This document shows, in pieces, positions 1-57,322 of a stretch of DNA of 64,000 nt; the stretch's first letter is position 1; the number at the start of each line of letters is the position of its first letter. A model generated the notes under the pieces. It had not been told where the DNA came from. It was given only the letters and a program-made list of their open reading frames with translations, and did no database searches. Source of the stretch: Guillardia theta CCMP2712 (lineage: Eukaryota > Protista > Cryptophyta). Where the stretch lies: positions 269,569 through 333,568 of the forward strand of contig NW_005434628.1 of NCBI RefSeq assembly GCF_000315625.1, in the 5' to 3' direction. Both the position numbers and the translations under genes were made by a program.

Positions 1-10440
<10,440 letters not shown>

Positions 10441-10589
10441 CTGTTGACCATGAACTCTCCTGCGTGCTGTCTCACCTTCCCTATCTCTCTTTCCTCCTTC
10501 TCTCAACCGTTGAACCGCTCTCATCCTCTTCCTCCTTCTTGTCTCTTCTCCTTCGCACCACTGCCATTACAGAGGAAGGCAAAGTACTT

Positions 10590-11110
10590 TTACTGCTAGG
10601 GGTGGGGGTAGTACCCCTGCCCCTCTCTGTTCCACCCCAATGCCTTGAGGACCCATCGAAAAAAAGGCAACATGGGTAGGGTATGTTGTATCACCCCCGT
10701 TCCAACAGCAAAATATCGGATGTTTTCCAGGCCATCATTGAAAGTACCGGTGATTGTTTGAGTTGCACCGGGTAGTGAACCAATAGGAGGGGTGGGGGGT
10801 CAATCATACACGGCGAGGGGTGAGTGGGGGTGGGGGTCACAGCCATAGGGGCGAACAGACAACTTTGACAAGAGATTGACTATATACAGTCCATTATTGA
10901 CTATATCTATGAGATGTTGACAACAGAGCTTCTTAAAGAGCTTATTCGATTGACTATGGAGACGATGAACCTATATAGTCAAGAAAAGAAGTTCTATGTT
11001 GCTGAGATTTGTGGGTGGGGGTGGTAAAGTACCCCCATCCAAGTAGCCTTTTGATTCTTATTTTATTGGGTACGATAAGAATGGGGTTTGGTTGTAGGGG
11101 GTGGGGTACA
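10590..11110. promoter_or_regulatory. GGGGTA/TACCCC-rich intergenic block in the divergent region between the RCC1 and PGI genes; contains 4 TTGACTAT motifs
   Basis: Dense GGGGT/ACCCC/GTACCC words; TTGACTAT at ~10876, ~10897, ~10950 and inverted at ~10975. Regulatory role inferred from position. Confidence 0.45.
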
Positions 11111-11504
11111 CTGAACGAAGGATCCCATGGCTGACACCAAGGTGAAGTGAGCAAGTCCAGGAATGGGGGAGGGGGGGGGAGAGGAGAGAAGTGAGAGGAG
11201 AGAGGAGAGGAGAGACAAAAGAAGGATGGAATAAAGGACAAACACAGGAAGCAAAGACGGGCACAGGGAAGGAGGGAGAACCGAAGGAAGGGAAGGGAGC
11301 GGGGAGGATTACCGATGGCATTTTGGGACGATCTTGTTTCATTCAACGAGATGATGTCAAAGCTTGAGTGACTAGCATTTGATCTGATCCAAAACTGGAG
11401 ATGCAACATGGTCCAGGGGAAGGAGCAGAAAAGTGTGATTGTAGGTGTACCTTGCGAGAGGGCGTCGCACAGTCGAAAGAAATTCCGGAGTCATAACGAG
11501 GGTG

Positions 11505-11910
11505 ATGGGGCAGGCCTGGGCCGCACTAGAGAAGCATCATCATGCGATCAAGGAGGTCCATATGAGAACGCTCTTCGAGAAAGAGCCTGCAAGATTCCAG
11601 CAGCTCAGGTGATCTTCCTGTTCATCAGAGAAACATCAGATATGATTTATGTGTGTGTTTCTGCCTGCGGCCCAACCATGAGTTGTTGTCATTCGCTGAT
11701 TCGAGAACTTACAGCTTGCAAGTTGGCGATATTCTGCTGGACTACAGCAAGAACCGCGTCACAGCAGAGACGATGCAGCTGCTGACGAACCTCGCAAGTG
11801 AAGCTGGTGAGCTGGCTCGAGGTCGTTATCCTTCAAGCCTCAAGCAGTGGCAGGTGTTTGCGAGAAGAGAGATCAGATGTTTGCTGGGGCCACAGTCAAC
11901 ACGACAGAAG
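11505..11910 (+). CDS. PGI: Glucose-6-phosphate isomerase, 5' fragment (3 exons) truncated by an assembly gap
   Basis: Spliced translation [91 protein letters not shown] and MF.G..+N.TE are PGI N-terminal hallmarks. Confidence 0.92.
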
Positions 11911-12010
11911 NNNNNNNNNNNNNNNNNNNNNNNNNNNNNNNNNNNNNNNNNNNNNNNNNNNNNNNNNNNNNNNNNNNNNNNNNNNNNNNNNNNNNNNNNN
12001 NNNNNNNNNN
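11911..12010. other. Scaffold gap (100 N) followed by a (GA)n tract at 12011-12045
   Basis: Run of N; the rest of PGI does not resume after it, so the true gap is much larger than 100 bp or the join is wrong. Confidence 0.97.
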
Positions 12011-12049
<39 letters not shown>

Positions 12050-12257
12050 TTAAAGAACAGGCGCGGGGGACACGGGGGACCCTCCTCCAGCGCGTTACGG
12101 AGAGGGAAAACCGTGGCATCGCAATGAAGTATACAAGCATCCCGAGAGTGAAGGGCCCGAGGGGAAAGCCTAGGGAGGGAAGAATCTGTGACTAGTCGAC
12201 ACGTCCACGTTGCTCTCTTGCCGCCCAGCGGGCCTCTCCTGAAACACAACGATCTCC

Positions 12258-13409
12258 TTAGCCACGAGGAAGAGGCTGTTGCCGCATCGGCTGCAGATGG
12301 GAGCTCCCGCCTGCGAGACAACAGTCACGCTCCTCGCAAGCCATAGATGAGGCGAGGGCCACCAGCTTCTGGACTTCACAGAACCGGCACTCGTTTGGAA
12401 GCGGCTGCTGAAAACATGAGTTAAGGAGGAGGCGAGGCAGGGGGTGGGGCGGGGGAAAGGAACAGGTCGAGAAGTGGGGGAGGGGGAGGAACGGGGTGAG
12501 GAGGAGGGAGAGGAAGTACCTCTGTGCTGTCCTGCACATGGCAGACAACCTGCACTTGTGTCACTGAGAATGTCTCCTGCAACCTCACTCTCCCTCACCG
12601 CTTGTAGGTTTGAGAAGGATGCCTCTCCCGCCGGCAGCGCTGGGGCATTAGGGGCAGCGTCACCTGACTGCCACTCCGCTAGCACCTGCAGAGGGAGCCT
12701 GTCAGTCCAGCAACAGACGCTGCTGTCACTGAGTAGCGCATGCTTGCCTTCTTGGCCTTTGAGATTCTCAGGTACCTCCAGAATATGTATCTGCGTTTCC
12801 CGCAGTCACGGGGGCAAACGCAACAATCCTGCCTCACATCATTCCCAGGGCGAAGGCGGAGCTGAGGAGAATAACAAATATGTACATGACCTGGCACAAG
12901 AGTCAGCCGGCACGAAGCTAGCAAGCAGCAGGAGCCAACCAGCGGCTTTCTGGTGATTATTTCTTGAACTTGAATGCCTTGTCAGCACAAAGGGAGCACA
13001 GTCGATGAAGCTTACCGCATAATCCAGTGTTATCCCCTGGTAGAACAGAGTGAGGGAACACATCAGGCATGGTCGACAAACAAACCTGTGGCCTCCCACA
13101 TGCACGTACAAGCACTTTGACAGCAGCCTCTACTCGGGTACGAATTTGACGTAAGCAAGGTCCGGGAATGGTATTCGTGACTTACATTTGGTTGGCCTGC
13201 GAGCAAACATCGATGGATGCATGGCTGCAAGTGTTTGCAGTGGTGAATTTTTTCCCGCATTCAGTGATACAGCAGTTCGTGTTTGTATTCCTTGACATCC
13301 CGCCGCTGGACGAGTTCAAGACAAATGTCGACGAGATTTCTTCTAGTCTGCTAGTATGAGTCAGGTTTCCCATCATGTTGGCCATGCATGCAGGGTTGAT
13401 CCATAACAT
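12258..13409 (-). CDS. Hypothetical multi-exon Cys-rich protein
   Basis: Minus-strand ORF pieces separated by GT-AG introns with CT-rich sense strand; CxxC motifs (CLPC, CRFC); no recognised family. Confidence 0.35.
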
Positions 13410-13594
13410 CAGGCTGACACTAATTCAGCTTCCCTCGCCTCTCCTCTCCTCCCTCCCTCCCTCCCTCCCTCCCTCCCTCCCTCCCTCCCTCCCTCCCTCC
13501 CTCCCTCCCTGCACCTCCCTTCGCATATCCTACTGCCCGTTCTCACACGTTCACTCCTCTCTGAGTTCGACAGTTCTTTAGTTACGTATTTTTT

Positions 13595-14500
13595 TAACCA
13601 CCCCTACCCGACCATTGTAGCAGAAATATGGGGGAAACAAAGGGTATCTCAAAAAACAAAACCCCGATTTCAGCCGGGCTATTCAGCCCCACCCCTCTAC
13701 CCCCCAATATTCAATATATGGTCCCTCCTTGACAACATCAAAAAGTTAATAATGGTACCCCCTGGCCTCAAGAGGGTACTCACCCCCACCCCGTTTTTCT
13801 ATAGAAACACTGGGGTGATGAGAGGCGTTCTTTCCTCACAGCCCCACCAGCCTCACCCCCTAGTCGCAGGCTATTATTATTCACGTCAGGGTACATACAT
13901 GTACCCCTACCCGGTCTTGTTTTTTACTTTGGAGTACCCCTACCTGAAGTCAACTCTGCTCCAACCACCCCCCCTGCCCTCTCCCATCTTGCGCCCCCAC
14001 AGAAATCGATCCAACACCCCTGCTCCCATGATCCACCCCACCCCCTCGGGACTCATCCGATTAGGGACGTACACGATATGTACACTATCCAATATACGCA
14101 CCCCCTTACCAGTTTACAGTACCCCTGTGTTCTATATGACAAATGGTACATCCAGTACCCCTCAGTTAGCACCCCTACCTATGGACTCAGTAGCCTACCG
14201 CTATTTTGGTTGGTGCAAAATGGGGTAGTCATTTATAACGCCCCTCCATTTTTAAAACATATTTAAATATCGAAGAAGAGACGTTTCACGTACGAGCCTG
14301 TTACTATGCCCGGCCGCACCGTCACTGTGTGTGACGGGCCGCTGACAGGTGCCGGGCGGACCGGGCCCGGGGCCCGGGACTCCCGTCCGGACGCATTCAA
14401 GCCTTGGCAACGCCGGGCCGGCGAAGGAGCAAGAGTACGGTCTTTTGGCACCGTTGAACCCGGCCCATTGCAAGATCGGACACGGAGGCTGTACTGAGTA
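13595..14500. other. Bipartite intergenic module: TACCCC-rich block (13595-14240) plus CG-palindrome block (14300-14500)
   Basis: Many TACCCC/ACCCC words, then CCGG/GGGCCC/CGGACCG/GTCACTG words. Confidence 0.7.
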
Positions 14501-14555
14501 GAAGGCTAAACCGATCGCTAGGGAACTTGATTTACTTCCTGGGCTAGTCAGCCTC

Positions 14556-17500
14556 TCACACCACCCAGACTTTGATGTTGCAATCCGCGCCAGTTGACAC
14601 AAGTTGACCAGGGGAAAGGAACTTCACAGCTAGAGGTCGAGCAAGCGAAGTCAGCTGGCGCAAACAGTGATTTAAGGGTGTCTGACCTGTCACTCCACCC
14701 ACATTGGCTCGGTCTAGCACCGTCCTCTTGTTCGGGCCACCTTCCACGCTCCACACGATGATCTTGGAGTCCAACCCGCCGGTGGCGAACTTAGACGAGT
14801 CTGAGATGTGGGAGCGGTCAACGCTTTATGCAGCCAGCATGCCAGCCGATTCACCTGGAGACCAATCCAAGCACGTGATCTTGGCGAGGTGAAAAGTCAT
14901 GCCCTTGGTCTTGACGGACTTGCTGACGGCATCCCATAGGATCACTTCCTTCCCCACATCGCCAGACGCCAACAGCTTGCCGCATGGCGAGTATGCCACC
15001 TGGTGAAAGGCAGTCAGATAAGATCATAATCAACAGACTCTCGTGACCTTGGTCACTGAGCTGTGATGCTCCGCTAGCTCCTGGGCGGGCGAGAGCTTGT
15101 CGCCAGCCAGAGAGAAGATGCGAATCTTGTTGTCCTCGCACGCCACAGCCACCTGCCTTGCCCATCAGTTGGTCCTTGAGGGTTGTCGATTCTCGTCTGC
15201 CTCGTTTTGAGCAGGTGAAAGCGAAACACCCGATGCCCCGAAGGAGATGGGTGTTGAGCTTGCGATCTTCCAAGCGGTGCCCTGGGTAGGACGATTGAGG
15301 TAAGGATGAGTGAAGTATACCGAGGATCAGAGAGACAGGGAGCTCACCTGCTTTCTGACGCACAGGAGGGCCTTGTTGGTAGCGATAACACAGAGCTGTC
15401 CATCATTCGAGAGGCTGAGCCCAGCTGGCTGACCTCCGAGCGACAAGGATTCTCCGACCTTGAGGAGCAACAATCTCAGATCAGGTGGCAAGCTCCTCCT
15501 TCGAACGCACCACTTCCATCTTGCTGAGGTCAGCGGTACGAAAAGTGTCATCAAGGCCACAAGACACAAGGGTATCTCCGCAGATGGCGTGATCAGCGAT
15601 GGCGTTGGTGTGCCACTTGCCCTGTTGCATGTCAGATGGGCGACGCAGCTCAAGAAGGCAAGAGAATTGTCACCTGCAGACTATAACCTTCTGCTTGTCC
15701 CAAGGCGAATCTAGCCACAGGGTGGCAGGCGTTAGACAGGAGGACCTAAGTAGAACAGGCCTCAAGCCTACTTGTTCACGAGACCGTCGTAGCTGGCAGA
15801 GACGATCAAACCCTTCTTCGGATCAGTGGTGAGAGCCGTGACGTTCTTGTTGTGCCCCCTGATCACCTAGGAGGTCCCTAACTTTCAGCACTCGGCGATG
15901 AGGAGATCCTGCCAGCATCGCTCACCCGACTGAAGGTTCCAGGTGAGGCTGCGTCAAGGTAGGTAAGATCTCCTCGGAGGGACAGCGAGATGATCTGGTT
16001 GCTGTTGGGAACCCACGCGACCCCAACCTGTGCGATTTCAGAACATTTCGATAGCGTTGATGACGTCGCATCCGCTACCTGCATGTCCTCAGTCGCGGGC
16101 TTTGCTCCTCCAATGCTCCAAGTTCCGATGTTCGCGTATGTGTTGGCATCCCACACAATGACCTAAAAGCATTCCAGGCATTTCAGAGATCGCAGAACCC
16201 CAAGAGACAAGATGAAGCATACAGTTTTGTCTGCGGAGGCTGTGACAATCTTGGAAGAGTCTGACGACCAGGAGCACGCGTAGATGGTTCCCTTGTGTCC
16301 CTTAAGCTCCCCTGAAACAGCAGGTTCGCTATACGATACAACGGAAGCTTGAGAAGCTACCGATCTTTGAGCTCGATGCACTATCATAGATGAAACCAAG
16401 CATGTCGGATCCAACCTTTCCACAACATGTCATTCGAACTCGTTGTCGTTCGACTTGACTCACGGTGCAATATTTGGTGCCATCGGGCGAATATCGGACA
16501 CAGTTGACGAATTTGGTATGGTCCTGTCCAAAATGCTTAAGATTTTGAGCGCTGGTTTGATTTCAAACCAAACCTTGAGAGTCTTGGCAAACTTGAAGGG
16601 AGGTCCATCCAGCAGCGTAACCTGATTGAAGAAAGCATCAGCTCCAAGCACTCAAGAAAGAATGAGCTGGAGTGGAATTTTCTGCAAAAGAGAAGTTTGC
16701 AATCAAGTTCATGCGGTCAGACGAACTCCCATGTGTTCTACAGCATCCACATCTGCGTGAATACACAAAACATACCTGGAAATCCTCTGATGCTGTAGCG
16801 ATCTGGAAGGGCTTGACACTTGCCAGCAGGTATCAGCTGGAAATCATGGAACGAGGAGACTTTAATTACGGCTTGAAATCACAAGAGAGAATCTTCTTGC
16901 TGTGTCCCGCAATCTCTCCAACGCTGAAAGAAGAGCGAGTTAGGGTAGCTCTTAACCCCGTGACGATCACTCAACCTGCTTCCGGTATCCCACATGAAGA
17001 CACGTCCAAACGAGTCCTTCCCTGTACCAGCGTGAGTGGACGAGGATGCTGCCTTCATCCATTGAGCCTTTTCTCACCATCACCGACGGCAACAATCCTT
17101 TGGCTGTCCGGAGACCACTGAATGTCATGGATGGCTCCTCCAAGGCACTGGGATGCAAGAAAACAGTAAGCACGGGGTCTGACTTGTCTAGTGAGCAAAG
17201 GTAGACCTGAGCTTCAAACTTGATGATATGCTCGGGGTTGTCAAGCGACCAAACTTTGACTACACCAGAGGCTGGGAGAAGCTCAACACGTCATATGGTA
17301 TCTGGTGATGATAGACAGTGCACCATCTCCTGACGCAACCCATGCGCCTGATGGCGATGGTTTAGCAACAGTAACATCCTTGGCGTGTTCTGTGTCGAAA
17401 AACAGGTAAGGTTGAGGTGCGCACAGAAACTTTGCGACACCAGTGAACACTTCTGCTGAAAGAGGGTTAGAGACGCTACGAATGATCACGCTTCTGCCAC

Positions 17501-17663
17501 AGCCATAGAACAGTTTCTCTCCCTGCATATATGACCCGTGAGTTCAGGGATTGCATGCACGCATGTCGAGAACCTTGGCGTCTACGCTAATCGTGGTGCC
17601 TTGTCCTCTCGTTGTTGCCGGAGATGCCGCAAAGATTTCTTGATACGGCTTCAACACAATCAT
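14556..17663 (-). CDS. AIP1: Actin-interacting protein 1 / WDR1 (WD40 repeats), many short exons
   Basis: MIVLKPYQEIFAASPATTRG, EHAKDVTVAKPSPSGAWVASGD, DIQWSPDSQRIVAVGDG, ARVFMWDTG, VGEIAGHSKKILSCDFK, GPPFKF, HTKFVNCVRYSPDG, LVSTGADCNIKVWVV* all match the AIP1 family. Confidence 0.93.
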
Positions 17664-17989
17664 CACAACCTCATAACATTGATTTGGAACGAAATCCATT
17701 CAAAAGTTGAGGTCCATCCAATCCTTACACCCGGTGATCGAACTTCCGAGTAAACAGCTTTCACCCACCTGCTTTGTCCCTTCCCTCCCCTTACTGCCTA
17801 CACGACTCCATGCCCTCTCTCCACTTGAAACATGGTGACCGTCTCCAACTTTGGCATTTCCCCCTCTCCACGACCGCCCTTCGTCCACACCAAACCCCTC
17901 CTCCTCCCATCTCAATAGTGCTTCCCAGCCATACCAGAGCAGCCATGCTGTCGTTCTGTCGTCAGTATCCTCTTCTCTAACCGGATTCC

Positions 17990-18725
17990 ACAGGGCACAT
18001 CGGGGGTGGTTGTAAAGGTTGTGGGGTTATCTTGTTTGGGGGTACTGATGAAGGAGGGTGGTAGGAGTACCCCATTTGAGTCTGATATTATCGTTTAAAA
18101 GTACGGGTACTTCCCATCTCAGGCGCCCTTGCAGGGGTAGATTTGAAAGTGGTGGGGTATTCGCCGGCTTATTCCAGGGGTTATTGGGCCGGGAGGGCAT
18201 GAGGGTGACGCCATTGGAACAATCGGGAAGACGGTTATTTTGACCGTTACAGTCCCCGGTACCGTACTAGGCTGTCACTGTGCACGGTGGCACTGCGGCA
18301 CTGTGCCCGGCCGGCGTGTCCGATCACTGCGGCAGGACCGGACGCCGGCTGCGGCAGTGCCGGATCGCTTCAGACTCTGAGAGCGACTGTTCCGGAGGTG
18401 GGGGGGGGGGGGGGGCGGTCAGTTCCGAACTCAGCGACTCGGCGGCGACTCCGGCGAGTCACCGTGGCGGGGCGGCAGTGTCCGGATCGGGCCCGGGTCC
18501 CCGGCCGGGCGCGATCACGGGGCCCGGCCCCCGTCCGACGCCGGGCCGCCGGCGGGTCGCCAGGTCCGATCGGACCGTCGTCACCGCAAGGCCGCGCTCA
18601 GCTTTCACCGTGCGGCGCCGCGGGGGCCGGGCGTCGGACAGTACGGTCCGGTCTCGGATCCACTGGCAGCCAGTGCGGCGCCGGGCACCCGGCGTCCGGC
18701 CGATACTGATACTGAGCGGGCCTGC
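17990..18725. other. Bipartite intergenic module: GGGGTA-rich block (17990-18260) plus long CG-palindrome block (18260-18725)
   Basis: Upstream of AIP1; words CCGATCGG, TACGGTCCG, GGGCCCGG, CACTG/CAGTG, GACTC/GAGTC. Confidence 0.7.
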
Positions 18726-18774
18726 GCTAATAAAACTGAGGAGGGCCTTCCGCCAGAAATAGATCTGCCAAATA

Positions 18775-19625
18775 ATGTTCGCCCTGCTCGCAGCGGCCAG
18801 CTCTTCTAGCAGGTACGAAGGACAACAAGCGATCCCCCAGCCGTTATGGTCATGGTAGATGGTCGGATAGAGCTAGCTGACTCGGACAAGTGAGGTTGCC
18901 ATCTGTGAGGCATATTGCTCCAGCCGTTCATGGCGGCATATGGTGGCAAAATGACAAGGTCACTGAGCCATGAGGAACGAACTTGTGGCCCAGTGGTGCA
19001 TCATCATCGGTGCCTTACACGAGTAGGAAAGTCAAAGTAAGTGAAGTATGGTAGGCTCAAGAAACATCTCAACTCAGATGTGCTACTTGTACAGATAAAG
19101 CTATACCTAGCACAAGCACCTGAGTGCCCCAGAAGCAGAATGTTTGTGATGATGTTGTCAAACCAGTACCAATGAGTTGAAGGAGCTAGACGCAAGAGTT
19201 GGCTGAGAATTGTGCTCTTCAAAGCACAATGCTACTGTGTGAATTTGAGCTCTGATTGTTCTAGTTTGCTATCACACTCTCAACGTTGCAGTGTACAGCA
19301 CAATCGATGTCTTCTAGAACAACATGTGAGAAACAGGGTGGAGATGGAGATGGAGATGGAGATGGAGATGGAGATGGAGATGGAGATGGAGATGGAGATG
19401 GAGATTATGGTAGAGGTTGTTGTAGTCAATGCTGACTTCGATTTCAGTTCTGGTTCGTGTGACATTTCACACGGCCAATTTTCCATCGCATGCAGCAGCA
19501 TCTGCTCGACAGCATGGCCGGGTGCAGGATGCATCCCTGCAGGATCTGGGACGTCAGACACGTCCAAGAACACTAGCGACAGATTTCAGTGGGGCTGTCC
19601 CGCCACCGGACAAGGGTCCTGCTAA
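18775..19625 (+). CDS. Possible small Cys-rich spliced protein or gene relic
   Basis: MFALLAAASSSS start, GT-AG segments, last exon SGSCDISHGQFSIACSSICSTAWPGAGCIPAG...FQWGCPATGQGSC*. No continuous frame could be established. Confidence 0.25.
19341..19405. repeat. (GAGATG)n microsatellite
   Basis: About 11 copies. Confidence 0.95.
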
Positions 19626-20625
19626 CTTGTAACCAGACAGTCACAGGGCACTATGGCCGCAATGACTTACGGTCACTGACTGTGAATTTGAGCGGCGGAG
19701 GGAGCGAAAGACAAGGGAGACAGGCATGGCCGTCAGGGTCACACGTGACTTAGAGTTACTTGATATCGTTGATGTGGGAATGAACTCGTTCTCTTGACAT
19801 TCCGTCACGCAGCGCAGTTGGTCTCTATGACATGCGACAAGACCTTCTCATCTATTGACTCTCCCCCCTCCTCTCCCATCCCACTCAGTGGGTTTCAGCT
19901 CGCTGACCTATCCAGGAGGTACCAATGAGGCAGAGAGATCCCAGCACAGACCGTCTTGAGAGATGATGCCATCGCATGACTCAGAACCGTCTCGACGCCT
20001 CATGCTTCATACCTTGCTCCTACGAGTAGCAAAGAGGCGGCGATCATGATAAGAAGCAATCTCGTCAGTTTCACTGTTGCTGAGGTTGTGTTGGAACGGA
20101 GAGGATAGGGGGACGATACAGACAGGCAGACTGAGAGTTTCAGCACTTGGTACATCACGCTGGAGGTTGAGACGATAATGCACGAGCCTTGCACATAGAC
20201 GAGCAGATGTGTCGGACGATCACCCCATGAGATGTCAGATGCTCTGAGTCAGCAAAGGAGAACATCCGTGGGGATGAGTTCGAGGTTCAATTTCAGCTGA
20301 AGCTCCTACTAGCCCACGTTGTTTGCGTTTGAATGTTGATTTGTGTTCACTTGTGTTTGTAGTTTCACAGTCCTCGTCCTTTCTACCGGTTCTCCACGAC
20401 TCGTCGTAGGAGTGGTATTGACAAGTGGGAGCAAATCTCATGATTATGATCCCTGAGCCACCTGAGCTGTTCGACTCACAGACGATACCACCACCTCCTC
20501 CTCCTGTACCAGCGCTTCACTTCTCCGCTGTCACCTGATCCTATATACAGGAATGAACTGCAACATGATATGAACAAGACAATGTCAGGTGTGCAATGAG
20601 ATACAGGCAGCCATAGAAGCTGTAT

Positions 20626-20859: not shown

Positions 20860-23800
20860 TTATTGATAAAGAGACATAGCATAATTGATACAAGATTGAT
20901 TGACATTCGCGTCGGTATACGTCTGAGCGATGGAACCGCAATCGGATATTGAAGTCGAGCCGCTTTGCAATGTTGTCGCATTGACCGCACACTTGACGCA
21001 TCCCCCGTACACAGCTACCTCGCTCACCCCTAGCACACCCGTGCCAGCCTTCTCGAGTCGAATGTACTGCCCGACATCCGAGCAGTTCATCGAGATGTGA
21101 GGGTTAGAAGTCTGTGTGAAAGAGGAAAGCTCCGGGACGTACGTAGACGAGTTGAAACGATAGAGGTCACTGGCGTATTGCTTGGGCCAACCTGTGCTAG
21201 GCTCTCCGACATTCACCGCGGTGGAGGCGTACATGTATGTTCCGTCATTCGCTCCGAAAGCAGATCCACCGGTAAACTGCCCGCACGAGGCGGTACCTGC
21301 CAACACCCCATCGAGCCAGAGGTTGATGGTTCCAGTGCTGATGATGTATTGCCAGGCTACAATGTGGTAGAGTCCATCTGCTGGGAAGGTGTACAGGTCG
21401 ATGCAAGCCGCGCCGATGATGCTGCCACCAACGGGAATAGACGTACTCCCATTCCCAGCTCGGAAGCGAAACACAGGTGTGGTGCTGCTGTCCCTCACAC
21501 CGATCCATGTGCCTGTATATGTAGCCCCGGCCTCAAAGATCAACCCGTCTGTGATGTTGGTAGGGAAGAGTACTCTGCATATGAAGAATTGATCGCTCGT
21601 ACCGTATGACTGACTGATGGCGCTGCTGAAACCGTACCTCGAAGAAGGGCTGAATGACGTCACGTACGCATCGAGCGGCAAAATGATCGTACCAATTGTG
21701 CCGCATAGTCTCCCTGAGCCAAGCACGGTCGAGTTGCTCAGGTATACGTTGACGTTCTCCGTGTTGGTGTAGTCGAGGTAATCCGGGTAGATGCGAACCT
21801 CTTGCACCAACTGCATGGATTGCAAGTCAACTTGCCAGTACAGGTCAGCGACGCTGCTCGTGACAGCGATGCTCTGTGGGCTATTGAAATATCCGTCGAT
21901 TGCCTTATCGGGGCCAGTGCCAGGAGATGCCGTGCTTGTCTGAGTAGACGGGCAGGCGCCCGCGCTGCACACCCTTGGAAGGTCGAAGGCGTTTCCCGAC
22001 GGACTCCAGGAGCCAGCAGCGCAAGGCAAACTGCATGGAGCCATGATATCCGGGCTCTCTTGGGTCGTCACTCCGTTGTCTGCACAGCTCACGCACCCAC
22101 CATACACCGCTACCTCGCTCAGCCCCAGTCTCGCCCTCCCGGGTTTCTGTATCGTGACATACTGGCCGAGATAGTCGCACCGTATGATCTCCTCTATGTT
22201 CCCCAACCTCGGGATCGAAGCCAGCTGGGGAACATCCGAGAAGGAGCTGAACTGGTAGAGGTCGCTGGCGTAATGGTTCGGCCACCCTGCTGTTGCCTCA
22301 CCGACTGTTATTGACGAATTGCAGCTCAAGATGTACGTTGCATCGTCGCCTCCGCTCCAAGAGGTGACGGCACTGTTCCACTCCGTGGTGGAGCTTGTTC
22401 CTTTCAAAGCTCCGTCTATCCAAAGATTGATCGTCCTCGTGCTCACGATGTACTGCCATGCAACAATGTGGTATTGGTCGTCAGAGGGAAAATCATGAAC
22501 GTCAATGCATGATGCCGTAGACGTGCCACCAGACCCCACGGTGATGTTCGTTCCTCCATCTCCTGCGCGCAATCGGAGCACAGGACGTGTGCTGCTGTCT
22601 CGGATTCCTAACCACGTGCCTGCATCCGAGCCCCCCGCTTCGAAGATCAGCCCATTCTGTACGTTACTTTGGAAGAACAACTTGCAAATGAAGAACATGT
22701 CGCTTGCACCCCATGACTGAGCAATAGCAGCAGAAAATCCAAAGGTACCCTGAGGGTTATAAGACTTGACTTTCACATCGAAGGGGGAAGTCAAGGATTC
22801 GATTTTTCCACATAGATGACCGGACCCAACGGTAGAGTTCTCACTCACAAACACAAACACACTCTCGCTCAGCGTGTAGTCCAGGTAATCTGGAAAGATA
22901 TGAACCTCCTGTACGAAGTTGAGAGCCGTGAGATTGACCTGCCAGTATGCATCGGTAGCGATCGCAGTCTCTGCAATGCTGTCGGCCTTGTTGTAGTAAC
23001 TGTCCACGGCTTTTGCGGCACCAGTGCTCGTGGAGGCATCAGAGGTCTGCACCGCTGGACATGCACCTGCGGTACAACTCCTCGCAAAGTTAATGGAGTA
23101 TCTGTACCTAGAGTACGAGCCGTTGGGACACGACATAGTACAGGGCACGGAAGCCATCACATTCACTGCATTGCAGATGCTGCTGCAGGTGCTGTCCTTG
23201 CCGCTCGAGCATGTCGAGCAGTTCGAGCATACTGTATCGCTGTTGTTGCTGCAGGCGCTGCTGATGTACTTGCCGCTCGGGCATGTCGAGCAGTATGCGC
23301 ATACTGTATCGCTGTTGTTGCTGCAGGCGCTGCTGATGTACTTGCCGATCGGGCATGTCGAGCAGTTCGAGCATACCGGGTTGCTCCAAGTTGCTATGTA
23401 TACATTGATGCTGTATGCATGGCCAACAACATTGTATGTGGGACCGGAATTCCAATAAAACCCGGTCCCCATAGTGTTGCCTTTTTCAAACCGCAAAATT
23501 TGATCTGTATAGATTGCAGTTGAGTTCGTTGATATGTAGGCTGCCAAGGAACTGTTGTCATCATAGTATGTGGAATAGTCGATTCCCCCAGATGAGGACC
23601 AATCTGCATGGATGAAGAAGTAATACCTGACAAAGAGCAGCTGGTTCTGCTTGTTGTAATACAGCCTTTCCTCCCACTGTGACAAGACAGAACCAGTATC
23701 TGAGAGCAAGGTTCGACTGTACGTCCATGACAAAGAGCATCCTATGCTCAAGTATACGTTGCCTGAGCAGGTACATGGCGAGCATACCGAGTCACTTGTA

Positions 23801-24285
23801 CCGCTACATCCCCCAGTCTTGTAATACCCACTAGGGCAGGATGAGCATGGGGAGCATACCGTATCATGCGTACCGCTGCATCCCCCAGTCTTGTAATACC
23901 CACTAGGACAGGTCGAGCATGTCGAGCACGCCGAGTCGCTTGTGTTGCTGCATCCCCCGCTCCTGTACTTCCCGCTGGGACAGGTCGAGCATGTCGAGCA
24001 TACCGTATCACTCGTACTGATACATCCCCCGCTCCTGTACTTTCCACTAGAACAAGTAGCGCATTTCAGGCAAGAATGGCTTGAAGAATCCCAGTAATAG
24101 TTGGAGTTGCAGTCACAGCCCGTGAAATGTCCTGGGTTGAGGGACTGACAAGAAACTTGATAGGAGTTCGGATCAACGCAAGACTGACAAGAAGACTCAG
24201 AGCTGCAAGCCTGTGAGATGGAGGTATCGCACTCCATCCCATAATCATACAGCAACACCAACATACACGCCTGCCCCCACTGCAT
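20860..24285 (-). CDS. Intronless 1141-aa Cys-rich surface protein: TNFR-like 24-aa repeats, then two F-type lectin (FTP/F5-8-like) domains each with a LamG/ConA-like insert, and GCC2/GCC3-like Cys modules
   Basis: Repeats CSTCSTCPSGKYRSGGCSNTSDS and CSNCSTCPSGKYISSACSNNSDTV; AxQTS..A.KA+D, YWQV.L, GQY+.+.K..L.+SEV.VYG motifs twice; inserts with GLIFEAG, YHIVAWQY, INLW+DG. Confidence 0.8.
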   Translation of the reverse strand: MQWGQACMLVLLYDYGMECDTSISQACSSESSCQSCVDPNSYQVSCQSLNPGHFTGCDCNSNYYWDSSSHSCLKCATCSSGKYRSGGCISTSDTVCSTCSTCPSGKYRSGGCSNTSDSACSTCSTCPSGYYKTGGCSGTHDTVCSPCSSCPSGYYKTGGCSGTSDSVCSPCTCSGNVYLSIGCSLSWTYSRTLLSDTGSVLSQWEERLYYNKQNQLLFVRYYFFIHADWSSSGGIDYSTYYDDNSSLAAYISTNSTAIYTDQILRFEKGNTMGTGFYWNSGPTYNVVGHAYSINVYIATWSNPVCSNCSTCPIGKYISSACSNNSDTVCAYCSTCPSGKYISSACSNNSDTVCSNCSTCSSGKDSTCSSICNAVNVMASVPCTMSCPNGSYSRYRYSINFARSCTAGACPAVQTSDASTSTGAAKAVDSYYNKADSIAETAIATDAYWQVNLTALNFVQEVHIFPDYLDYTLSESVFVFVSENSTVGSGHLCGKIESLTSPFDVKVKSYNPQGTFGFSAAIAQSWGASDMFFICKLFFQSNVQNGLIFEAGGSDAGTWLGIRDSSTRPVLRLRAGDGGTNITVGSGGTSTASCIDVHDFPSDDQYHIVAWQYIVSTRTINLWIDGALKGTSSTTEWNSAVTSWSGGDDATYILSCNSSITVGEATAGWPNHYASDLYQFSSFSDVPQLASIPRLGNIEEIIRCDYLGQYVTIQKPGRARLGLSEVAVYGGCVSCADNGVTTQESPDIMAPCSLPCAAGSWSPSGNAFDLPRVCSAGACPSTQTSTASPGTGPDKAIDGYFNSPQSIAVTSSVADLYWQVDLQSMQLVQEVRIYPDYLDYTNTENVNVYLSNSTVLGSGRLCGTIGTIILPLDAYVTSFSPSSRYGFSSAISQSYGTSDQFFICRVLFPTNITDGLIFEAGATYTGTWIGVRDSSTTPVFRFRAGNGSTSIPVGGSIIGAACIDLYTFPADGLYHIVAWQYIISTGTINLWLDGVLAGTASCGQFTGGSAFGANDGTYMYASTAVNVGEPSTGWPKQYASDLYRFNSSTYVPELSSFTQTSNPHISMNCSDVGQYIRLEKAGTGVLGVSEVAVYGGCVKCAVNATTLQSGSTSISDCGSIAQTYTDANVNQSCINYAMSLYQ
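23182..23375. repeat. 72-bp coding tandem repeat (x~2.7); a related 72-bp series (x~4) lies at ~23775-24065
   Basis: Near-identical nucleotide units GCATGTCGAGCAGT..GCATACTGTATCGCTGTTGTTGCTGCAGGCGCTGCTGATGTACTTGCCG. Confidence 0.9.
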
Positions 24286-24399
24286 ATCGCTCCCGGGTCG
24301 CCGAGTTTTGAAATGTATGCCTTAAAATTCCAAAATAAAAGCAACAATGAATTATTACGAGTCACGGTTTCAATTCATGGTTGTTTTCAATGAACTTGA

Positions 24400-24850
24400 A
24401 AGAGGGGCCAGGTGGGCTTGTGGGACTACTGGCAGCCACCCACCCCCCTTCTTAGGTTCGGCCTTTTGTACGAGTTTGTGCCACTCGAGGGCGGGTGGCC
24501 CTCGGAAGTTAAGAATCAACTTTTGACGTTCTCTTTGACTTCCGGGGTGCTGCGATCCGCCGGGAGGCCCGGGTGCCAGTACCGTCCGACACTCCGGGGT
24601 GACTGCGAAGGCGGCCCGGGGCCCGGGGGGCGGTGTAGCAGGCCCTCACTTACTCTGTGAGGGGATTGGACCAGTTCTTTTCAAAGGCTTGTTACAGTGC
24701 GCCCGGACCCACTGCCCATTTCGACCCACTGACTTACTAGTTAGTCAGGCTCCCCGTGTATTACTGAGGGGCAGTGGGCCGGCCCGGGGTCACCCGGTTT
24801 AGGCACGGCTACTGCCGCTCCCTCCATGATCCCCCGGGTACTGAGTACCT
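24400..24850. other. Mixed ACCCC / CG-palindrome intergenic module upstream of the 1141-aa gene
   Basis: GGCCCGGGGCCCGG, GGCCGGCCCGGGGTCACCCGG, CCCGGGTAC words. Confidence 0.6.
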
Positions 24851-25540
24851 CCGCCGAGCGGTTCAAACTGGATGTGAACTTCGGAAATGCGCGGCCAGTC
24901 GGTGGCACTGAGCGGACACCGTGTTTCGCGGCTTCTGAGAAAATGTCTCGAGATGTTTTCGAAGCCTGAGGACTCCGGGACTCCCGGGAGGATCCGAGTG
25001 AGTCTGTCATCGGCGTCCCGAGAGTCCAAGGTGCGTGACTTCGACTTATTATATCACTGCCCCCGGAAACCCGGTGGCATACAAAAAACAACAAATTACT
25101 TCCGAAGTTCAATGTATATTCATTCGTGTGAAACATGGTACTACGGCTTCTGGCGGGCGGATTTGACAAAACAAGTGCAAGGTTTACTCGAGCCTGCAGC
25201 AGGCATTTCATAGGTCCGCCTCAGACATTTGGGTTTGTCTAAAAAACTTGACCGCCGAATGCGGAAGCAGCAGGAAGGAGGAAACAGAACGAGAGAGAGA
25301 TTAGAAAACAAGTCACCCGAAAGATAATCGTATCAAGGATATAATCTGCCTCAAGGAATATCATCTTCTCGAGGATATCATCGTCTTATCAAGGATATCA
25401 TAATCGTTTCAACTCAAAGCACATCCCCTGCTGAGCAGGATAAGCGCAAATGATTGTTAAGATGTCCTCACGACAGCAGGGCGATCTCGTCATCCACAGC
25501 AACATCTTGAAGCCTAGAGAACAGTAACCAAAACAAAAAC

Positions 25541-27216
25541 ATGATGACAAGGACGGTGATCACAGCGTACCATGGGCTCATCCCCACCTGCCTCCCTCCT
25601 CTCCTTCTCCTGCACTTGATGCATGCTCGAGGTACGCGGTTCCCGCAGACTAGACCGTATCACACTGACCCCTTGCTCTCAGCTCTGGGCCCCTCCGACC
25701 GCGACGCTGGAAGCTGCAGAGAGCTGGAGAGGAGGGGCCTGACCCAGCTGGACGCGGCAGAGACTGAGAGATGGCTGCGGTGCCACCATGTCGGGGAGGA
25801 GGCGGTCCAGGCCATGGGAGGAAGCAACGTGACGGGAGCAGAGCTCGTGGTAGGAGAGGACGCGGAGAGGCAGGAGGACTCTAAGCTGTATGATCGCTCC
25901 AGGGGATGTCGAGGAGCGAGCTGGGAGAGGTGATGGGGATGAGCGCGGTGAGCTGGCGGCAGCGAGGGGGAGCTGGAAGATGAGGTGGCGGCAGGTGCAG
26001 GCGTGGAGGCTGAGGAAGCTAGCGATGCAAGGTGAGCGCGAGGCAGGGGAGGAGCAGGTGAGGCGGAGGCTTGAGGATGGAACAGATCTTGAAAGCGATG
26101 ACATGCAAGGAGCAGGGGAGGTCTTGGGTGAAGTGCGAGCAGCACCAAGGGATCAACAGCTGCTTATCCCATCGTGTCTGCCTGGACGTGACGGCGAGAA
26201 CGTTGGAGTACTTCGGCAGCAGCTCGCACGAAGCGTCTTTCGAAACCTATATCGCAGCCAAGTATCCTCCTTACTCGACTAACGAGGATGTGCTGCATGT
26301 GGAGCGATCGCCTGGGGAATGCGAGGGCTGTGAGTTCTTGCCCGGGACGTTCGCACTGGTAGGAAGGTACTACCCGCCCAACAGAGCACACGTGCTGGGA
26401 GATGAGGTGTGGGCGCTGTTCCAGGCGTTGAGCATCTGGGGGATGGAGGAGGAGTACAGGGAGGTACAGATCGTCCTGTGGGAGGAGGGGCGCAACGCGG
26501 ATGTGTTCGAGCTCGTCAACCCCCGGCCCGTGTGGACGACAGGGACGCTACTCAACGAGCACGGGAACTATGTCTGCATGGAGTCGCTTGTCTTCGGGCT
26601 CGCGCACCTCGGGTACGCTTTAGGGCATGCGTGCGAGCTGGGGCGGAGCTTGCGGTGCCGGCCCGCGTACCTAGCTCCTTTCCAGCAGAACGTGGTGCGG
26701 TTTCGACGACTGGCTCTGGAGCTGCACTCGATCCGGGAGAAGATGCCGCCTCAGCGCGCTCAGGTGGTGGTGATGCGCAAGGGCAGGAGGGCCCTCAACT
26801 CCATCCGCATCGTCAACACGGAGGAGGTGGCGGCGGCACTCGGAGAGCTGGAGGTGACGGTGCTGTCAGCGGACTGGTCGACGATGAGGAGCAAGGAGCA
26901 GCTGGCGGTGATGTCGGGGACCGACGTGCTCTTCTCCCTGCCCGGCAGCGACGTCATGAACGCCATCTGGATGCCGTTGGACCGCTCGCTCGTCACGCCC
27001 TGCCGCATCTTCGCCGACGGAGCGGTGGAGCATGGGAACGAGGCGGAGATCTGGTTCGGGTACCTGCACAACGTGACGCGATGGTGCGACTTCAACAGGA
27101 CGCGCGACGTGACGTCGTACAAGCAGTCGAGCTACATGACCGTGCCGGTGGACGTGATGAGGAGGCTGGTCGAGGAGCAGCTGAGGAGGCTGAGAGAGAA
27201 GGGATACGTGCAGTGA
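25541..27216 (+). CDS. Glycosyltransferase family 61-like (DUF563-like) protein with N-terminal hydrophobic leader and SAM-like domain
   Basis: Main exon in ORF 26071-27216: N.AH.LGD..W.LF, R.GRR..IVN.EEV, M.SKEQL.VM..TDVL.SLPGS..MNA.WMP (GT61 C-terminal pattern, with the HGAG motif as PGSD). Upstream exons are joined by ~50-nt GT-AG introns. Confidence 0.7.
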
Positions 27217-52839: not shown

Positions 52840-55800
52840 CTATGCTGTATGTGGAGGACGACTGCGTTTGTTGGTGGGACGCCTTGCCGAGCGATTTCCA
52901 TGGGTGCGTGACACTGAAAGTTGCCAGTGAAGCTCTTCAGCGCTTGGCTCGTCGGAGGAGTAGGTGGGCCATGAGACTGCGATCTTCTTCGTGTTCGATT
53001 CGATTATGATCGCCAATCCCAACCTCTTGTAAAGATTGATCGCGTTGCATGTTTGTTTGATCGCGTTGGATGTATGTTTAAGGGGAGGGGAGGGGAGAGG
53101 AGAGGAGCTAGAATCAGAGATGAGAGAACGTGAGAGGAGGGGAGTAGAGGATGAATCGGGGGCTTCCTCGTCTCATTCACACGCTGCTGAAAGAAAATGC
53201 AATCAAAGAGTAGATAGAGTGTTGACGGCCTTGTTCTCCTCATCGTGTGCTCGACATGTTCGAGCTCTTTGCTTTCAACCTCGCCAGCATTCCTTGCAGC
53301 CAAATCAGACAACATCTGTATGTGTAGCATACGAACCCTTGATGTCTGACGAGCTCACTTGATCGATGATGTCCGGAGCATTGTTCTTGACTGACATGAC
53401 AATTTCTATCCGATCTATCGGTTCAGCCTCATCCATTCTCATCACGACAAGTTACCTCGTTGTGGAGGAGAAGCGAGCGAGGAGTTGACGTCGGATGTAT
53501 CGGTGGGCGGCTGGTTTGACTCTGTTTTGTTCGCTTGCCTATTCACCCACGTGTGTAAGCAGCGCAAGGGGTAAGGAAGCAGGTTACCTTCTGTGAGAGG
53601 TTTCGGACGTGTTGCTGGCGACTGGACTCTTGGATGAGCTCTGCTGAGGCATCAGGAGTGAAGATGGAGGACGGGGACGAGAAGGAGAGGAAGGAGAAGG
53701 AGGGGAAGGAGAGGGAAGGGAAAGGGCAGAGTAGTGGAGCCGGGAGGGGGCGGGGGGGGGGGTGACTAGGGGAAAGAAGGGAGGAAAATTAAATGCCGAG
53801 AAGGTTGTCATGGGGGCGAGTAGTTGACCTGCTCGATGTGATCCGTGATGGCATCGTCCTGGAAGAATTCTGTCGAGTGATAGCTCACTGTCGACCTTCC
53901 TACTTCCTGCTGCCGTGATAAACGCTGAGAGAGGGAGAGGGAGAGAGGGAGGGAGGGAGAGAGAGAAGGAGAGAGAGAAGGACAAAAAAGTCAGGCGAAT
54001 CACAAGATGAGAGTAGATGACGATGAGGAGCTACGTCGACACAAGTGACAGACATGGGGGTTGACCAATGCAGTAGCAGCTCAGGAATCCTCTAGAAAGC
54101 GTTACTGACCTCGATCATCTCCTCTATCGCGTTGAACCTCGTGGAGACTGTGCTGTGGATTGTGAGGACTTGTGAACTGACCTGAGCAGAAGCGTGAGAA
54201 AGAGGAGCGGGCTGGTAGTGGGAGGGCAACGGGAAGAGAGCAGGGAAAGAAGAGGAGGAAGACGAGGCCAAAGGAGGATGAAGAGGGCCTCTACTTTCTC
54301 AAGGCTCTGCGCAAGGGCCTCTTGGCTCTCGACTGCGTTGAGTGATCGCTGCTCAAGCCCTGAGGAGAGAAAGTTGAGCAGGAGGACAGGAACAGTACAG
54401 AAGGGCAGACGAACATACGGATGAAGTAAGAGGTGAGATGAAGTGATGAGAACTAGAACAAGGAATGGAAAGGGATATGAAGACGAGAGAGTAGGGATGG
54501 AAAACATCACCGATCTCCATCCGTGCACTGCATTTCTAAGTGGTGCAAATACAGGATTGAGCACTACCTGAGATCTTCACTGCACTCTCAGAGTAAATCT
54601 GTTGAGCTTGACTGTTCCAAGGGGAGTAAGAAGGTTGGGAGGGGTAGAAGTTTCATACTTGATCATTTGCTCGATCATCTCAGAAGTATTCTTGTAATCT
54701 GAGGCAACCACGAGTCAGCGAGCCAGTTGTATGTCTTCTTGTCCGTTGCCTCGCTCCAGACGATTCAGAAGGGTCTTCTCTACTGACTTGACGGTCTTGA
54801 TGCTTCTTGTGTGTTGGAGCTGTCAAAGACGATGATGTCAATCACGGGAAAAGTCTTGACGAGCTAGTCAAACTACTTTGTTGTCAACATCCAGCGACGA
54901 GACCAGGCGATCGACAGGCCTGAGAGCAGCAGCAGCTCTCATCGTCTCCATTCTCAACCTCCTGAAGGATCGGATCGACTGGTTCATCCTCACCAGCTGC
55001 GGACATGACTCACTCCCAGCTCGGCGAGGCTTTTCTCACCTCGGCAAGCTGAAGAAACTTCTCCAGCACGGATGGAGCTCGGATCGCGCACGTGCGTTCG
55101 AACATGACTCTGCGCTGTTTCATGGATGCGTCCTCTGATGGGAGCGAGGGGAAAAGTTTTCCGCTGCTGTGACGAAGAAGTTCGGAGTTGTCATGGTGCC
55201 TCTGAAACTTCCACCAGCTGGGAGAAAGGTGAGAGCAGCAGAGGACGATGAGAACAGATGGCAGAGGGTGCGGGTCAAACAAGGACGGGATAATTAAGGT
55301 TAGGAATGAGCGGTAGGGAGGAGGGAGAGTCTGAGAATACAGATGAAGTGATTACCGGGCAAGCAAGGTCGCGGCTGAAATCTTGAGTTCCTCAAGTTTC
55401 ACCTGATCACTGATTGTCAACACGGCTGCAGGTAATGCGATGGTGATGTTGCCGCTCGATCAATGCAGAGAAGAAGCTGCGTCATGTCGCTTGACATCTT
55501 CGAGCTTTGAAAAACATTCAACAGCTGTTTCATCGAGAAAGTGATCACAAGACCTGTTGAGCAGGGCGATGAACAAGAAGATTGCCCACACAGTTCCCAG
55601 CAGAGCAGTTAACACCAACACGATCTGTATATAATCTCGTCAGCATACAGAAGGATTCGACGTCACAAGGGAGGCAAACCTGTCCAAAGTGAGATTGAGC
55701 ATACGATTGTTCGTTCAACATCCCAAAGAAAGCAAGTGCCACTGTCCTCACACTGTCCCTGATCGCCTTGACGTTAAACCCTCTTGACGCCAAACCCTTC

Positions 55801-57322
55801 CCTCCATACCAGAAGAAGTAGAAGTCACTCCCTGTCAGCTGGGCGTTGACAGGCAGTTCTGCAATCCGAATCGCATCTGAACCCGCCAGGGAAGGTGAGA
55901 AACAGCTGGACGTTTTCACTTCTCACATGCGAGGACGAGGATCGCGAAGACCATAACGAAGATGACACAGCTGACGGGACGTTTGCCCAGCACCCACTGC
56001 ACACATACAAGATGTCATCTCATCTGTCAGCAGTGAAATGCAGTACCCGGCTGACAAACTCGTCGGAAGAAGGGAGAGAAGATTGGAGGCCCATGATCCG
56101 GGCAATCTGTACAGATCGAGCAAGCCTGGGTTGGTCCCTTTCAGTGAGAAAAAGACGTCAAGAGTTCATCGCAAGACCTCATCTCTCTCCAAAACAAATG
56201 TTTGATAGATCGGAACACACTGAAGCATCTCTGAATGGAGTTTTTCAGTTGCGATATCGGTGTTTGGATATAAGAATACCAACAGTCCAAAGAATGCTCC
56301 CAGATCATCTGCAATTCAACAAACTTCAGTAGAACATTTCTTGCTTGCTGATTCTGGCCACCTGCATGATATCTCGACTGCATTCCATCAGGTCGAACGT
56401 TCCCATCAATCTGAAGTCTTATCAGAAGGCACTTGGAGAGTAGAGCGCGGAGATAGCAAGAAAGAAGAAAGGCAGACGAAGTGAGGGCCAAACACGGATA
56501 GGGAAGCAGAGCATGCAGCAGAAGAACAGGAGGAGGTTGAGGCAGATGGGAAGGAGGAAATATGGACACTGGCCAGGGAGCATGGTTAAACCTCGTAGTT
56601 TGAGAACGGAGGATTGACAGGCATCAAAATGAATCCTTCAACCGCATACCTAAACAAGTGATCAGTTGTAATGGTTCATAACATCATCGAAAGCATCGGT
56701 CACCATGAGATAAAGATCGCGACGTCCAAGGTGGGACTGAATGTCAGAGGAGCATCATGAACCAACTCCTGCAAGGCTAGGTGAGTACGTCCCCTATCCA
56801 CCGCGTCCTCCACTTACCTTGATAACCAAATGGCTGCGAAGATAACGAAGCAGCTGAAAGAAGGCTGCCACTGCAAACAAACATCCGATGCTTCTGAGGA
56901 CTTCAACGTTGCCCGGGAGCTGCAACCAGCAGTCAAGATTCCAATCAGGACCAGCAAGATCAAACCAGCTTGCATCGATGGCCTCTTGAGACAGCAACCT
57001 TACACTCCTCCGTCTCAAGCTGGGTGACCCCCATATGAAGCCTGTACTCCCTTGTGGCGATTAGAAAGAAACAGCTTGCCAGACACAAGACAGTGATGGT
57101 GTGAGCGAGGTACGAGCAATGCTGTATGGTTTCATTTAGCTTTCCACCTGCATGATCACCACGCATCTTGAGCTTCAGCTGTGGCTTCACATTCTTCTTC
57201 TCCAACTCTTGATCCACAATGTTAGCCTCTGCTGGGCTCTCCTTGGAAAACCCGAGATACTCTGATTTCTCCGGAGTTTCAAACGTCTCTCCCGGCAGCA
57301 TGCTGCCTCCTTCCTCTGCCAT
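52840..57322 (-). CDS. SK/KCNN-like (small-conductance Ca-activated K channel family) protein with a degenerate selectivity filter; 3' end approximate
   Basis: FFQLLRYLRSHL (S2), VEGFILMPVNPPF (S3, like LEILVCAIHPIP), WVLGKRPVSCVIFVMVF (S5), LTALLGTVWAIFLFIALLN (S6), KISAATLLAR..WWKF and RMNQSIRSFRRLRME (CaM-binding-domain-like helices), then a coiled coil. Confidence 0.68.

Follow-up and report, generated by a model that had tools for sequence, protein, structure and literature searches.

The K+ filter is lined by backbone carbonyls and requires the glycines of its signature, [ST]-x-G-Y-G-[DE]. SK2, one of the KCNN channels (SK1-3/IK, KCa2-KCa3), carries this signature as S-I-G-Y-G-D. The non-selective channels NaK, CNG, and HCN share the K+-channel pore fold, with a changed signature and lost K+ selectivity. 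The present study concerns a gene on the minus strand of a 64,000-nucleotide stretch of Guillardia theta CCMP2712 (the window; G000:C46:269569-333568), which lies within an 87-Mb genome of 669 contigs that was searched genome-wide. An earlier note on this DNA had read the gene as an SK/KCNN-like channel with GMLNEQ in place of its K+ filter. Our analysis reveals that the locus is a real, selectively maintained gene, and that its product is probably a six-helix P-loop channel subunit that lacks a K+ filter. Our tentative explanation is that the gene encodes one of the four six-helix subunits of a P-loop cation channel and arose, most likely, as a very diverged KCNN-type offshoot; KCNN-type ancestry is the leading origin, held with the same reserve.

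A spliced, conserved gene with an altered pore signature

The pore region had been read across a splice, and this reading is correct: exons 55876-55680 and 55624-55554 meet over a 55-nt GT..AG intron, and on the minus strand VRTVALAFFGMLNEQSYAQSHFGQ is followed there by IVLVLTALLG. The 3′ end of the pore exon reads AIRDSVRTVALAFFGMLNEQSYAQSHFGQ, and the 55-nt intron 55679-55625 comes next. The SK reference string that the note had used for comparison occurs letter for letter in PDB chain 9o48_A. When the filter is placed by counting back from the conserved Gly preceding S6, GMLNEQ (encoded at 55724-55707) occupies the slots that T-V-G-Y-G-D fills in the G. theta family and S-I-G-Y-G-D fills in SK2, with an equal spacing of 7 residues to the Gly, just as the note had aligned it. 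Only eight residues lie between the filter Glu and the Gly at the start of S6, and another Gly is 11 residues further on, as in SK2. The K+ selectivity signature is absent; both of its glycines are gone, with an Asn-Glu pair at the mouth. The loss of both filter glycines makes a K+-selective pore unlikely. The conserved Asn-Glu pair suggests either a side-chain-lined cation site or a non-conducting subunit. The long aromatic turret is also present: 35 residues that hold the aromatic run GSDFYFFWYGGKG, encoded at 55832-55794.

The gene is conserved and under purifying selection. Against 1.84 billion representative proteins, the pore exon returned three entries: P0001, P0002, and one chance match to a repeat protein. 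P0001 is 91% identical and is an open frame through the intron on a marine metagenome contig, L002 (1232 bp); P0002 (EukProt, Hanusia phi) matches at 76% identity across pore helix plus filter. L002 aligns to positions 56408-55179 of the window with 92% identity and keeps every splice site of the shared stretch, and all 5 length differences between the two fall outside exons. Over seven exons, 21 synonymous and 15 non-synonymous differences were counted (dS 0.185, dN 0.038, dN/dS 0.21, Fisher p 5e-6). Orthologues that keep the altered filter, together with dN/dS, had been proposed as a check, and the outcome is favourable, since both relatives read GMLNE[QL]: GMLNEL in L002/P0001 and GMLNEQ in the Hanusia phi protein P0002 (GMLNEQSYAQSHFGQ). 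In the three species, 29 of the 65 columns of the pore exon are invariant, including R39, D40, and V42-T43-V45 of the pore helix and G51-M-L-N-E55, and the pore helix plus filter is nearly invariant (V-R-T-V-x-L-A-F-x-G-M-L-N-E). The turret, including its aromatic run, is not conserved in Hanusia. Both P0001 and P0002 read straight through the pore/S6 intron. P0002 in fact reads through three short introns of the orthologous gene, which indicates unspliced RNA or genomic DNA carry-over and gives no proof of a mature transcript. No relative was found in a JGI metagenome scan, and a paralogue search of the genome with the pore exon and with exon 55216-55040 gave self matches only. ESM Atlas language-model features of the pore exon were uninformative.

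The gene model has at least 11 exons in one continuous frame, separated by canonical GT..AG introns that are mostly 49-55 nt long, with one of 79 nt and one of 181 nt. It starts at the ATG at 57322, upstream of which lies an in-frame stop. Its features are as follows.

56999..57322, minus strand: exon 1 (ATG 57322-57320, 108 codons), the cytosolic N-terminus and the first hydrophobic helix, S1; donor after GAGTGTAAG, tentative
56818..56919, minus strand: S2 exon, the second hydrophobic helix; GT..AG borders, exact 5′ border uncertain
56704..56768, minus strand: exon of the S2-S3 loop and S3 start (TLDVAIFIS); GT..AG borders, frame continuity, codon score +6.1
56592..56649, minus strand: S3-end exon with the motif E-x5-P-x3-P-F (VEGFILMPVNPPF), the sole exon with a family-specific signal
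56362..56410, minus strand: S3-S4 loop exon; frame continuity, preceded by the 181-nt intron, codon score ambiguous
56280..56308, minus strand: 29-nt micro-exon, S4 start (DLGAFFGLL); length differences from L002 in both flanking introns, none inside
56178..56230, minus strand: S4 exon with basic residues R..S..R..K; frame continuity, 1-nt indel relative to L002 in the following intron
56047..56125, minus strand: S4-S5 linker exon (RLARSVQIARIMGL…SDEFVSR); GT..AG, 21 of 25 residues identical in Hanusia phi P0002
55927..55996, minus strand: S5 helix exon; codon score +12.7, hydropathy 2.13
55680..55876, minus strand: pore exon with the S5 end (Y)AIRIAELP, turret, pore-helix-like stretch, and GMLNEQ; codon score +19.8 vs -35/-25
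55625..55679, minus strand: pore/S6 intron, 55 nt, gtttgc...atacag; GT..AG
55554..55624, minus strand: S6 exon, beginning IVLVLTALLGTVWAIFLFIALLN; codon score +14.6, hydropathy 2.72; ends 2 bases into a codon, donor AG/GTCTTG

Codon usage was scored after training on 55 kb of open frames from G. theta. The modelled frame wins widely in exon 1 and in the exons of S2, S3, S5, the pore, and S6; very short exons give no information. Exon 1 scores +26.8 (vs -42/-67 in the other frames) and the S2 exon +8.2 (vs -3/-21). The S3-S4 loop exon differs from L002 by one synonymous and one non-synonymous change. A 50-nt intron, which splits a Tyr codon, separates the S5 exon from the pore exon downstream of it. 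The TGA that follows the S6 donor in the read-through frame of L002 fits an exon end at 55554. As a side observation, a CTGA[CA]-like element precedes the acceptor by 15-25 nt in the very short introns (43-55 nt) of the gene (57322-54715). Unlike the window gene, the fetched paralogues of KCNN, PKD, and Ion_trans type are mostly single large open frames.

Six transmembrane helices and a re-entrant pore-like loop between the fifth and the sixth are present in the predicted product, a statement of topology and not of homology. Hydropathy maxima are 2.02 for S1 (the best 19-residue window of exon 1), 1.69 for S2, 1.18 for the S3 start (0.18 for the S3-end exon), 1.61 and -0.08 for the S4 exons, 2.13 for S5, and 2.72 for S6. 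The fourth hydrophobic segment is basic and is followed by a 36-residue S4-S5 linker. The segment between helices 5 and 6, with a hydropathy of 1.02, is the most conserved part across the three species.

No public protein carries the pore exon, though the G. theta proteome is in the database searched. The gene is therefore apparently unannotated in the G. theta reference, whose annotation seems to overlook a conserved gene of at least 11 exons. One paralogue locus, L015 (contig C41), corresponds to the NCBI protein GUITHDRAFT_163588.

A proposed KCNN-type ancestry and the region beyond S6

A genome scan with PF03530 (SK_channel) gave weak matches at nine places, none of them at the window locus; these places are large open frames that match Ion_trans_2 and, below threshold, SK_channel. 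The profile A2, built from seven G. theta paralogues and four cryptophyte orthologues, matches the SK4/SK2 structures over almost all of their length (E 1e-46 to 1e-39) and other K+ channels over the pore only (E ~1e-17). Thus, G. theta has a true KCNN-type family. A word search of proteins with A2 returned mostly generic K+-channel pores. The locus L010 (L010:850-3147, minus strand; G000:C180:50349-52646) is a single open frame of 766 aa, KCNN4-like by direct phmmer against the PDB (E 5e-11), and its filter is L-P-V-G-E-V-D in place of the T-T-V-G-Y-G-D of its paralogues. This SK-type channel probably no longer selects K+.

Some further features of the family were observed. At L014 (G000:C18:727500-730500) and L013 (G000:C16:651000-654500), the pore helix and the filter are on separate open frames, which implies an intron inside the pore region. 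The S5-end motif of these two loci, Y..RI[AS]E, is common to L010, L003, and the window gene. The filter of L014 is V-G-Y-G-N. The segment L003:4600-8001 (G000:C42, ~23600-27000) is a long run of N, which may be an assembly gap, and adjoins an SK-like gene, C42:21616-23226.

Family tests of the window gene were done exon by exon. In region-restricted tests, each exon was compared with the topologically equivalent slice of A2 using 1000-20000 shuffles. The S3-end exon (56649-56592) scored 6.1 bits against the A2 S3 slice (shuffle p 0.0024) and ranked 2 among the 2576 six-frame pieces of the whole window, which served as a genomic null; neither PKD nor Ion_trans profiles matched it. The combined Fisher p of the region-restricted tests was 0.022, and off-diagonal controls were flat. 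The acidic-x5-P-x3-P pattern of S3 (HPIPG in SK2, LLPxPxPF in the G. theta family) is present in this exon, weak evidence when taken alone. By eye, and in tests that were not significant, the window gene also shares the S5-end motif Y..RIAE with L010 and L014, and it has Arg at both pore-helix Trp positions of the L010 subgroup and an S6 start of the form G-x-x-V-x-x-L-T-x-x-x-G as in SK2. Counted by hand, the gapless alignment to SK2 amounts to ~+24 in BLOSUM62, and the first 12 residues of S6 contribute almost the whole of this score. Matches of the S3 exon by tblastn in L005 and L004 were discarded, being on the strand opposite the paralogue genes.

Several results weigh against KCNN-type ancestry. 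The HMMER comparison that the note had named as a check found no match to Pfam SK_channel, Ion_trans_2, or CaMBD on any exon or open piece (hmmscan, E up to 10), exon-sized pieces being poorly detectable in such a search. Neither did phmmer of the exons against the PDB return a match, and when the pore-exon alignment of the three species was compared with A2 by hhalign, the probability was 0.2%. In unrestricted exon tests, which also used profiles made from PKD-type and Ion_trans-type channels of G. theta, Fisher values were 0.005 for PKD and 0.03 for Ion_trans vs 0.08 for KCNN. Motif tests against the L010 subgroup gave p 0.1-0.17, and no test but that of S3 was significant. The S6 end L-L-N and the filter Glu are more typical of TRP/PKD/Nav-type channels. 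Besides, the sole transcriptome-derived peptide, P0002 of Hanusia, is unspliced, and the 3′ end of the gene shows a frame discontinuity. In short, the spliced and selected gene, its six hydrophobic segments, and the pore-like stretch without GYG stand, as does the conservation of the altered stretch in two relatives. Membership of SK/KCNN gained no support from SK_channel, Ion_trans_2, CaMBD, or the in-genome KCNN profile, in exon-by-exon searches of low sensitivity.

How much these negatives say was gauged with a true paralogue. Uncut, and with a profile from which it had been left out, this paralogue reached 103 bits; cut to the exon sizes of the window gene, 2 of its 10 pieces were detected (the GYG pore piece and one S4 piece). 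Since exon-sized pieces of a true member are mostly undetectable, the negative exon searches are weak. Among all six-frame pieces of the locus, none scored above 1.7 bits with a local HMM of the KCNN-type family. A genome search with L007 and L010 as queries did not match the window locus, and permissive tblastn with sum statistics produced noise only. Ion_trans (PF00520) likewise had no hmmscan match at E up to 10 on any exon; 141 of 414 candidates were scored in the genome-wide scan with this profile. The PKD and Ion_trans exon matches are not collinear, and the unrestricted matches to these profiles indicate that the shuffle null is too lenient for membrane helices. Therefore, only the KCNN-specific S3 motif was counted as evidence, and modest evidence at that.

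The region 3′ of S6 holds two further features.

55352..55504, minus strand: two overlapping coding-like frames by codon scores, SKMSSDMTQLLLCIDRAA from 55504 and GNITIALPAAVLTISDQ(VKLEELKISAATLLAR-stop) from 55454
54715..55217, minus strand: candidate exons 55217-55040, 54996-54877, and 54819-54715 (stop included); helical, coiled-coil-like, GT..AG introns of 43/57 nt

From the S6 donor at 55554/55553, an acceptor 49 nt on leads into the frame SKMSSDMTQLLLCIDRAA, with a stop at ~55420, and an acceptor 98 nt on leads into the frame GNITIALPAAVLTISDQ; a possible donor, CAG/GTGAAA, lies at 55403/55402. Codon usage is coding-like in the SKMSSDMTQLLLCIDRAA frame first and from ~55453 in the GNITIALPAAVLTISDQ frame. 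Three differences from L002 are silent only when read in the GNITIALPAAVLTISDQ frame, and a 5-nt insertion in L002 near 55424 would need yet another acceptor. The frame jump near 55453 leaves no space for an intron, and L002 has the same jump; it could reflect alternative 3′ splice sites or an old C-terminal frameshift.

The three candidate exons have codon scores of +8.3, +9.8, and +7.0, with other frames negative, and can be reached in frame from S6 directly or from the donor at 55403. They are probably what had been described as calmodulin (CaM)-binding-like helices; no search tied the candidate exons to CaMBD or to the post-S6 part of the family. Compared with the family post-S6 slice (..AA.V[IL]Q..W..), the candidate post-S6 peptides gave p 0.05 to 1. 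No Pfam, PDB, or homologue match was found for these exons, and a word search with exon 55216-55040 returned nothing. PF02888 (CaMBD) gave nothing above the cut-off genome-wide, true paralogues included. A by-eye likeness of the post-S6 region to SK helices arose in three reading frames and was not counted as evidence.

Weighing the origin of the gene

The gene might instead encode a six-helix P-loop cation channel of another lineage, either a TRP/polycystin-like one or that of single-domain Ca2+/Na+ channels such as CatSper, NaChBac, and EukCat. The Glu of GMLNE would then be an ordinary acidic filter residue, with no degraded K+ filter involved. This was our first idea, drawn from LLN at the S6 end and L-N-E over L-G-D, and it was demoted to a rival on the missing PF08016 match at the locus and the short spacing from filter to S6. 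The S6 end FIALLN and the filter Glu, both typical of such families, speak in its favour, together with an S4 that is basic at every third position (R..S..R..K), the very many PKD_channel and Ion_trans genes of G. theta, and a p of 0.002 against the PKD profile for two exons in exon-level shuffles. However, those two matches lie ~30 profile positions apart, while the exons are ~190 residues apart, so that they are not collinear. PF08016 was scored on 128 of 128 genome candidates with 137 matches, none of them at C46:323-327 kb. The 8 residues from filter to S6 leave no space for the second pore helix of TRP/Nav-type channels. Furthermore, Asn at the S6 end also occurs in the KCNN-like paralogue L005, and the S3 exon matches the KCNN profile only. 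We consider this lineage unlikely.

That the product is no ion channel at all, merely a lineage-specific multi-pass membrane protein whose likeness to a pore loop is a coincidence of hydrophobic helices, appears improbable. The pore exon has no homologue beyond the Guillardia/Hanusia clade among the 1.84 billion representatives, and the empty JGI metagenome scan, the lack of a family match for any exon, and the uninformative language-model features agree with such a view. Yet six helices of which the fourth is charged, a long linker, a short, strongly conserved and less hydrophobic S5-S6 stretch, and G-x10-G at the start of helix 6 jointly give the look of a tetrameric cation channel, and the S3 motif matches the KCNN profile. 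If the gene belongs to another channel lineage or encodes no channel, it would be an ordinary lineage-specific membrane protein. Quite improbable, and the least persuasive of these explanations, is a decaying or silent gene, either unexpressed or truncated just past S6 with a decayed C-terminal gating region. Its absence from the public G. theta protein set, the unspliced state of the only transcriptome peptide, the frame change near 55453 without intron space, and the 5-nt insertion and early read-through TGA of L002 could all be taken that way. Against this stand the dN/dS of 0.21 over seven exons, with no exon indel and all splice sites kept in L002, and a filter and pore helix that are nearly invariant as far as Hanusia; a C-terminal truncation alone would not disable the membrane core.

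We return to the KCNN-type origin. In this scenario, the window gene would have diverged from the KCNN-type (SK/IK-like) family, which has expanded in G. theta. T-V-G-Y-G-D would have been rewritten to G-M-L-N-E-Q, and both pore-helix Trp residues would have become Arg. The result would be a pore without canonical K+ selection, which might pass cations non-selectively or let divalent ones through, or else a partner subunit that does not conduct. From the sequence we infer that the product works as a channel and descends from the KCNN family, and the same holds for its ion selectivity and for any gating by Ca2+/calmodulin; the gene model, conservation, purifying selection, six-helix-plus-pore-loop layout, and absence of GYG are observed directly. 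If the pore works, the gene would show how far the K+-channel fold can leave the GYG filter under selection.

A bolder proposal, which we think improbable, is a cryptophyte-specific channel that would combine an SK/IK chassis with a side-chain filter made of an Asn-Glu ring and the pore-helix arginines, an undescribed filter architecture on the K+-channel fold. The chassis would consist of a voltage-sensor-like domain, the long S4-S5 linker, and calmodulin-type gating helices. Were this proposal true, the channel could be a Ca2+-gated entry path for Ca2+/Na+ in an alga.

Comparison with described channels

Polycystin/TRP channels and single-domain Ca2+/Na+ channels (PKD_channel, Ion_trans; EukCat) share with the predicted product an acidic filter residue, Asn at the S6 end, and a basic S4. 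They differ from it in that the locus has no PF08016 match, the spacing from filter to S6 is short, and the S3 proline motif is unmatched by their profiles. NaK, CNG, and HCN channels are alike in principle, in our reading, as each has a K+-channel-type pore loop with a changed signature. Unlike these channels (TVGDG, TIGE, CIGYG), which keep at least one filter glycine, GMLNEQ has none at the equivalent positions, and a backbone-carbonyl filter may not form at all in the window protein.

In contrast to KCNN channels, the window gene lacks T/S-x-G-Y-G-D and the pore-helix Trp, its turret is ~20 residues longer, its S6 ends in Asn, and it has no SK_channel/CaMBD match. In common with them (SK1-3/IK), it has the six-helix layout, the proline motif at the S3 end, a weakly charged S4, and a long S4-S5 linker. 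Further points of likeness are an S5 end with Tyr and Glu, the SK2-like S6 start, and the helical, coiled-coil-like candidate exons downstream.

Within the same genome, L010 offers the nearest comparison for the filter. L010 is a single large open frame that matches SK4/SK2 directly, whereas the window gene has at least 11 small exons, none with such a match, and keeps neither filter glycine. Nevertheless, in both genes the filter departs from GYG and contains an acidic residue, and both have Y..RIAE at the S5 end, as does L014. Together with KCNN-type paralogues of altered filter such as L010, the window gene could provide a natural series for the loss of K+ selectivity in SK-type channels. 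It is thus best seen as the most extreme candidate of an altered-filter series and not as an isolated oddity.

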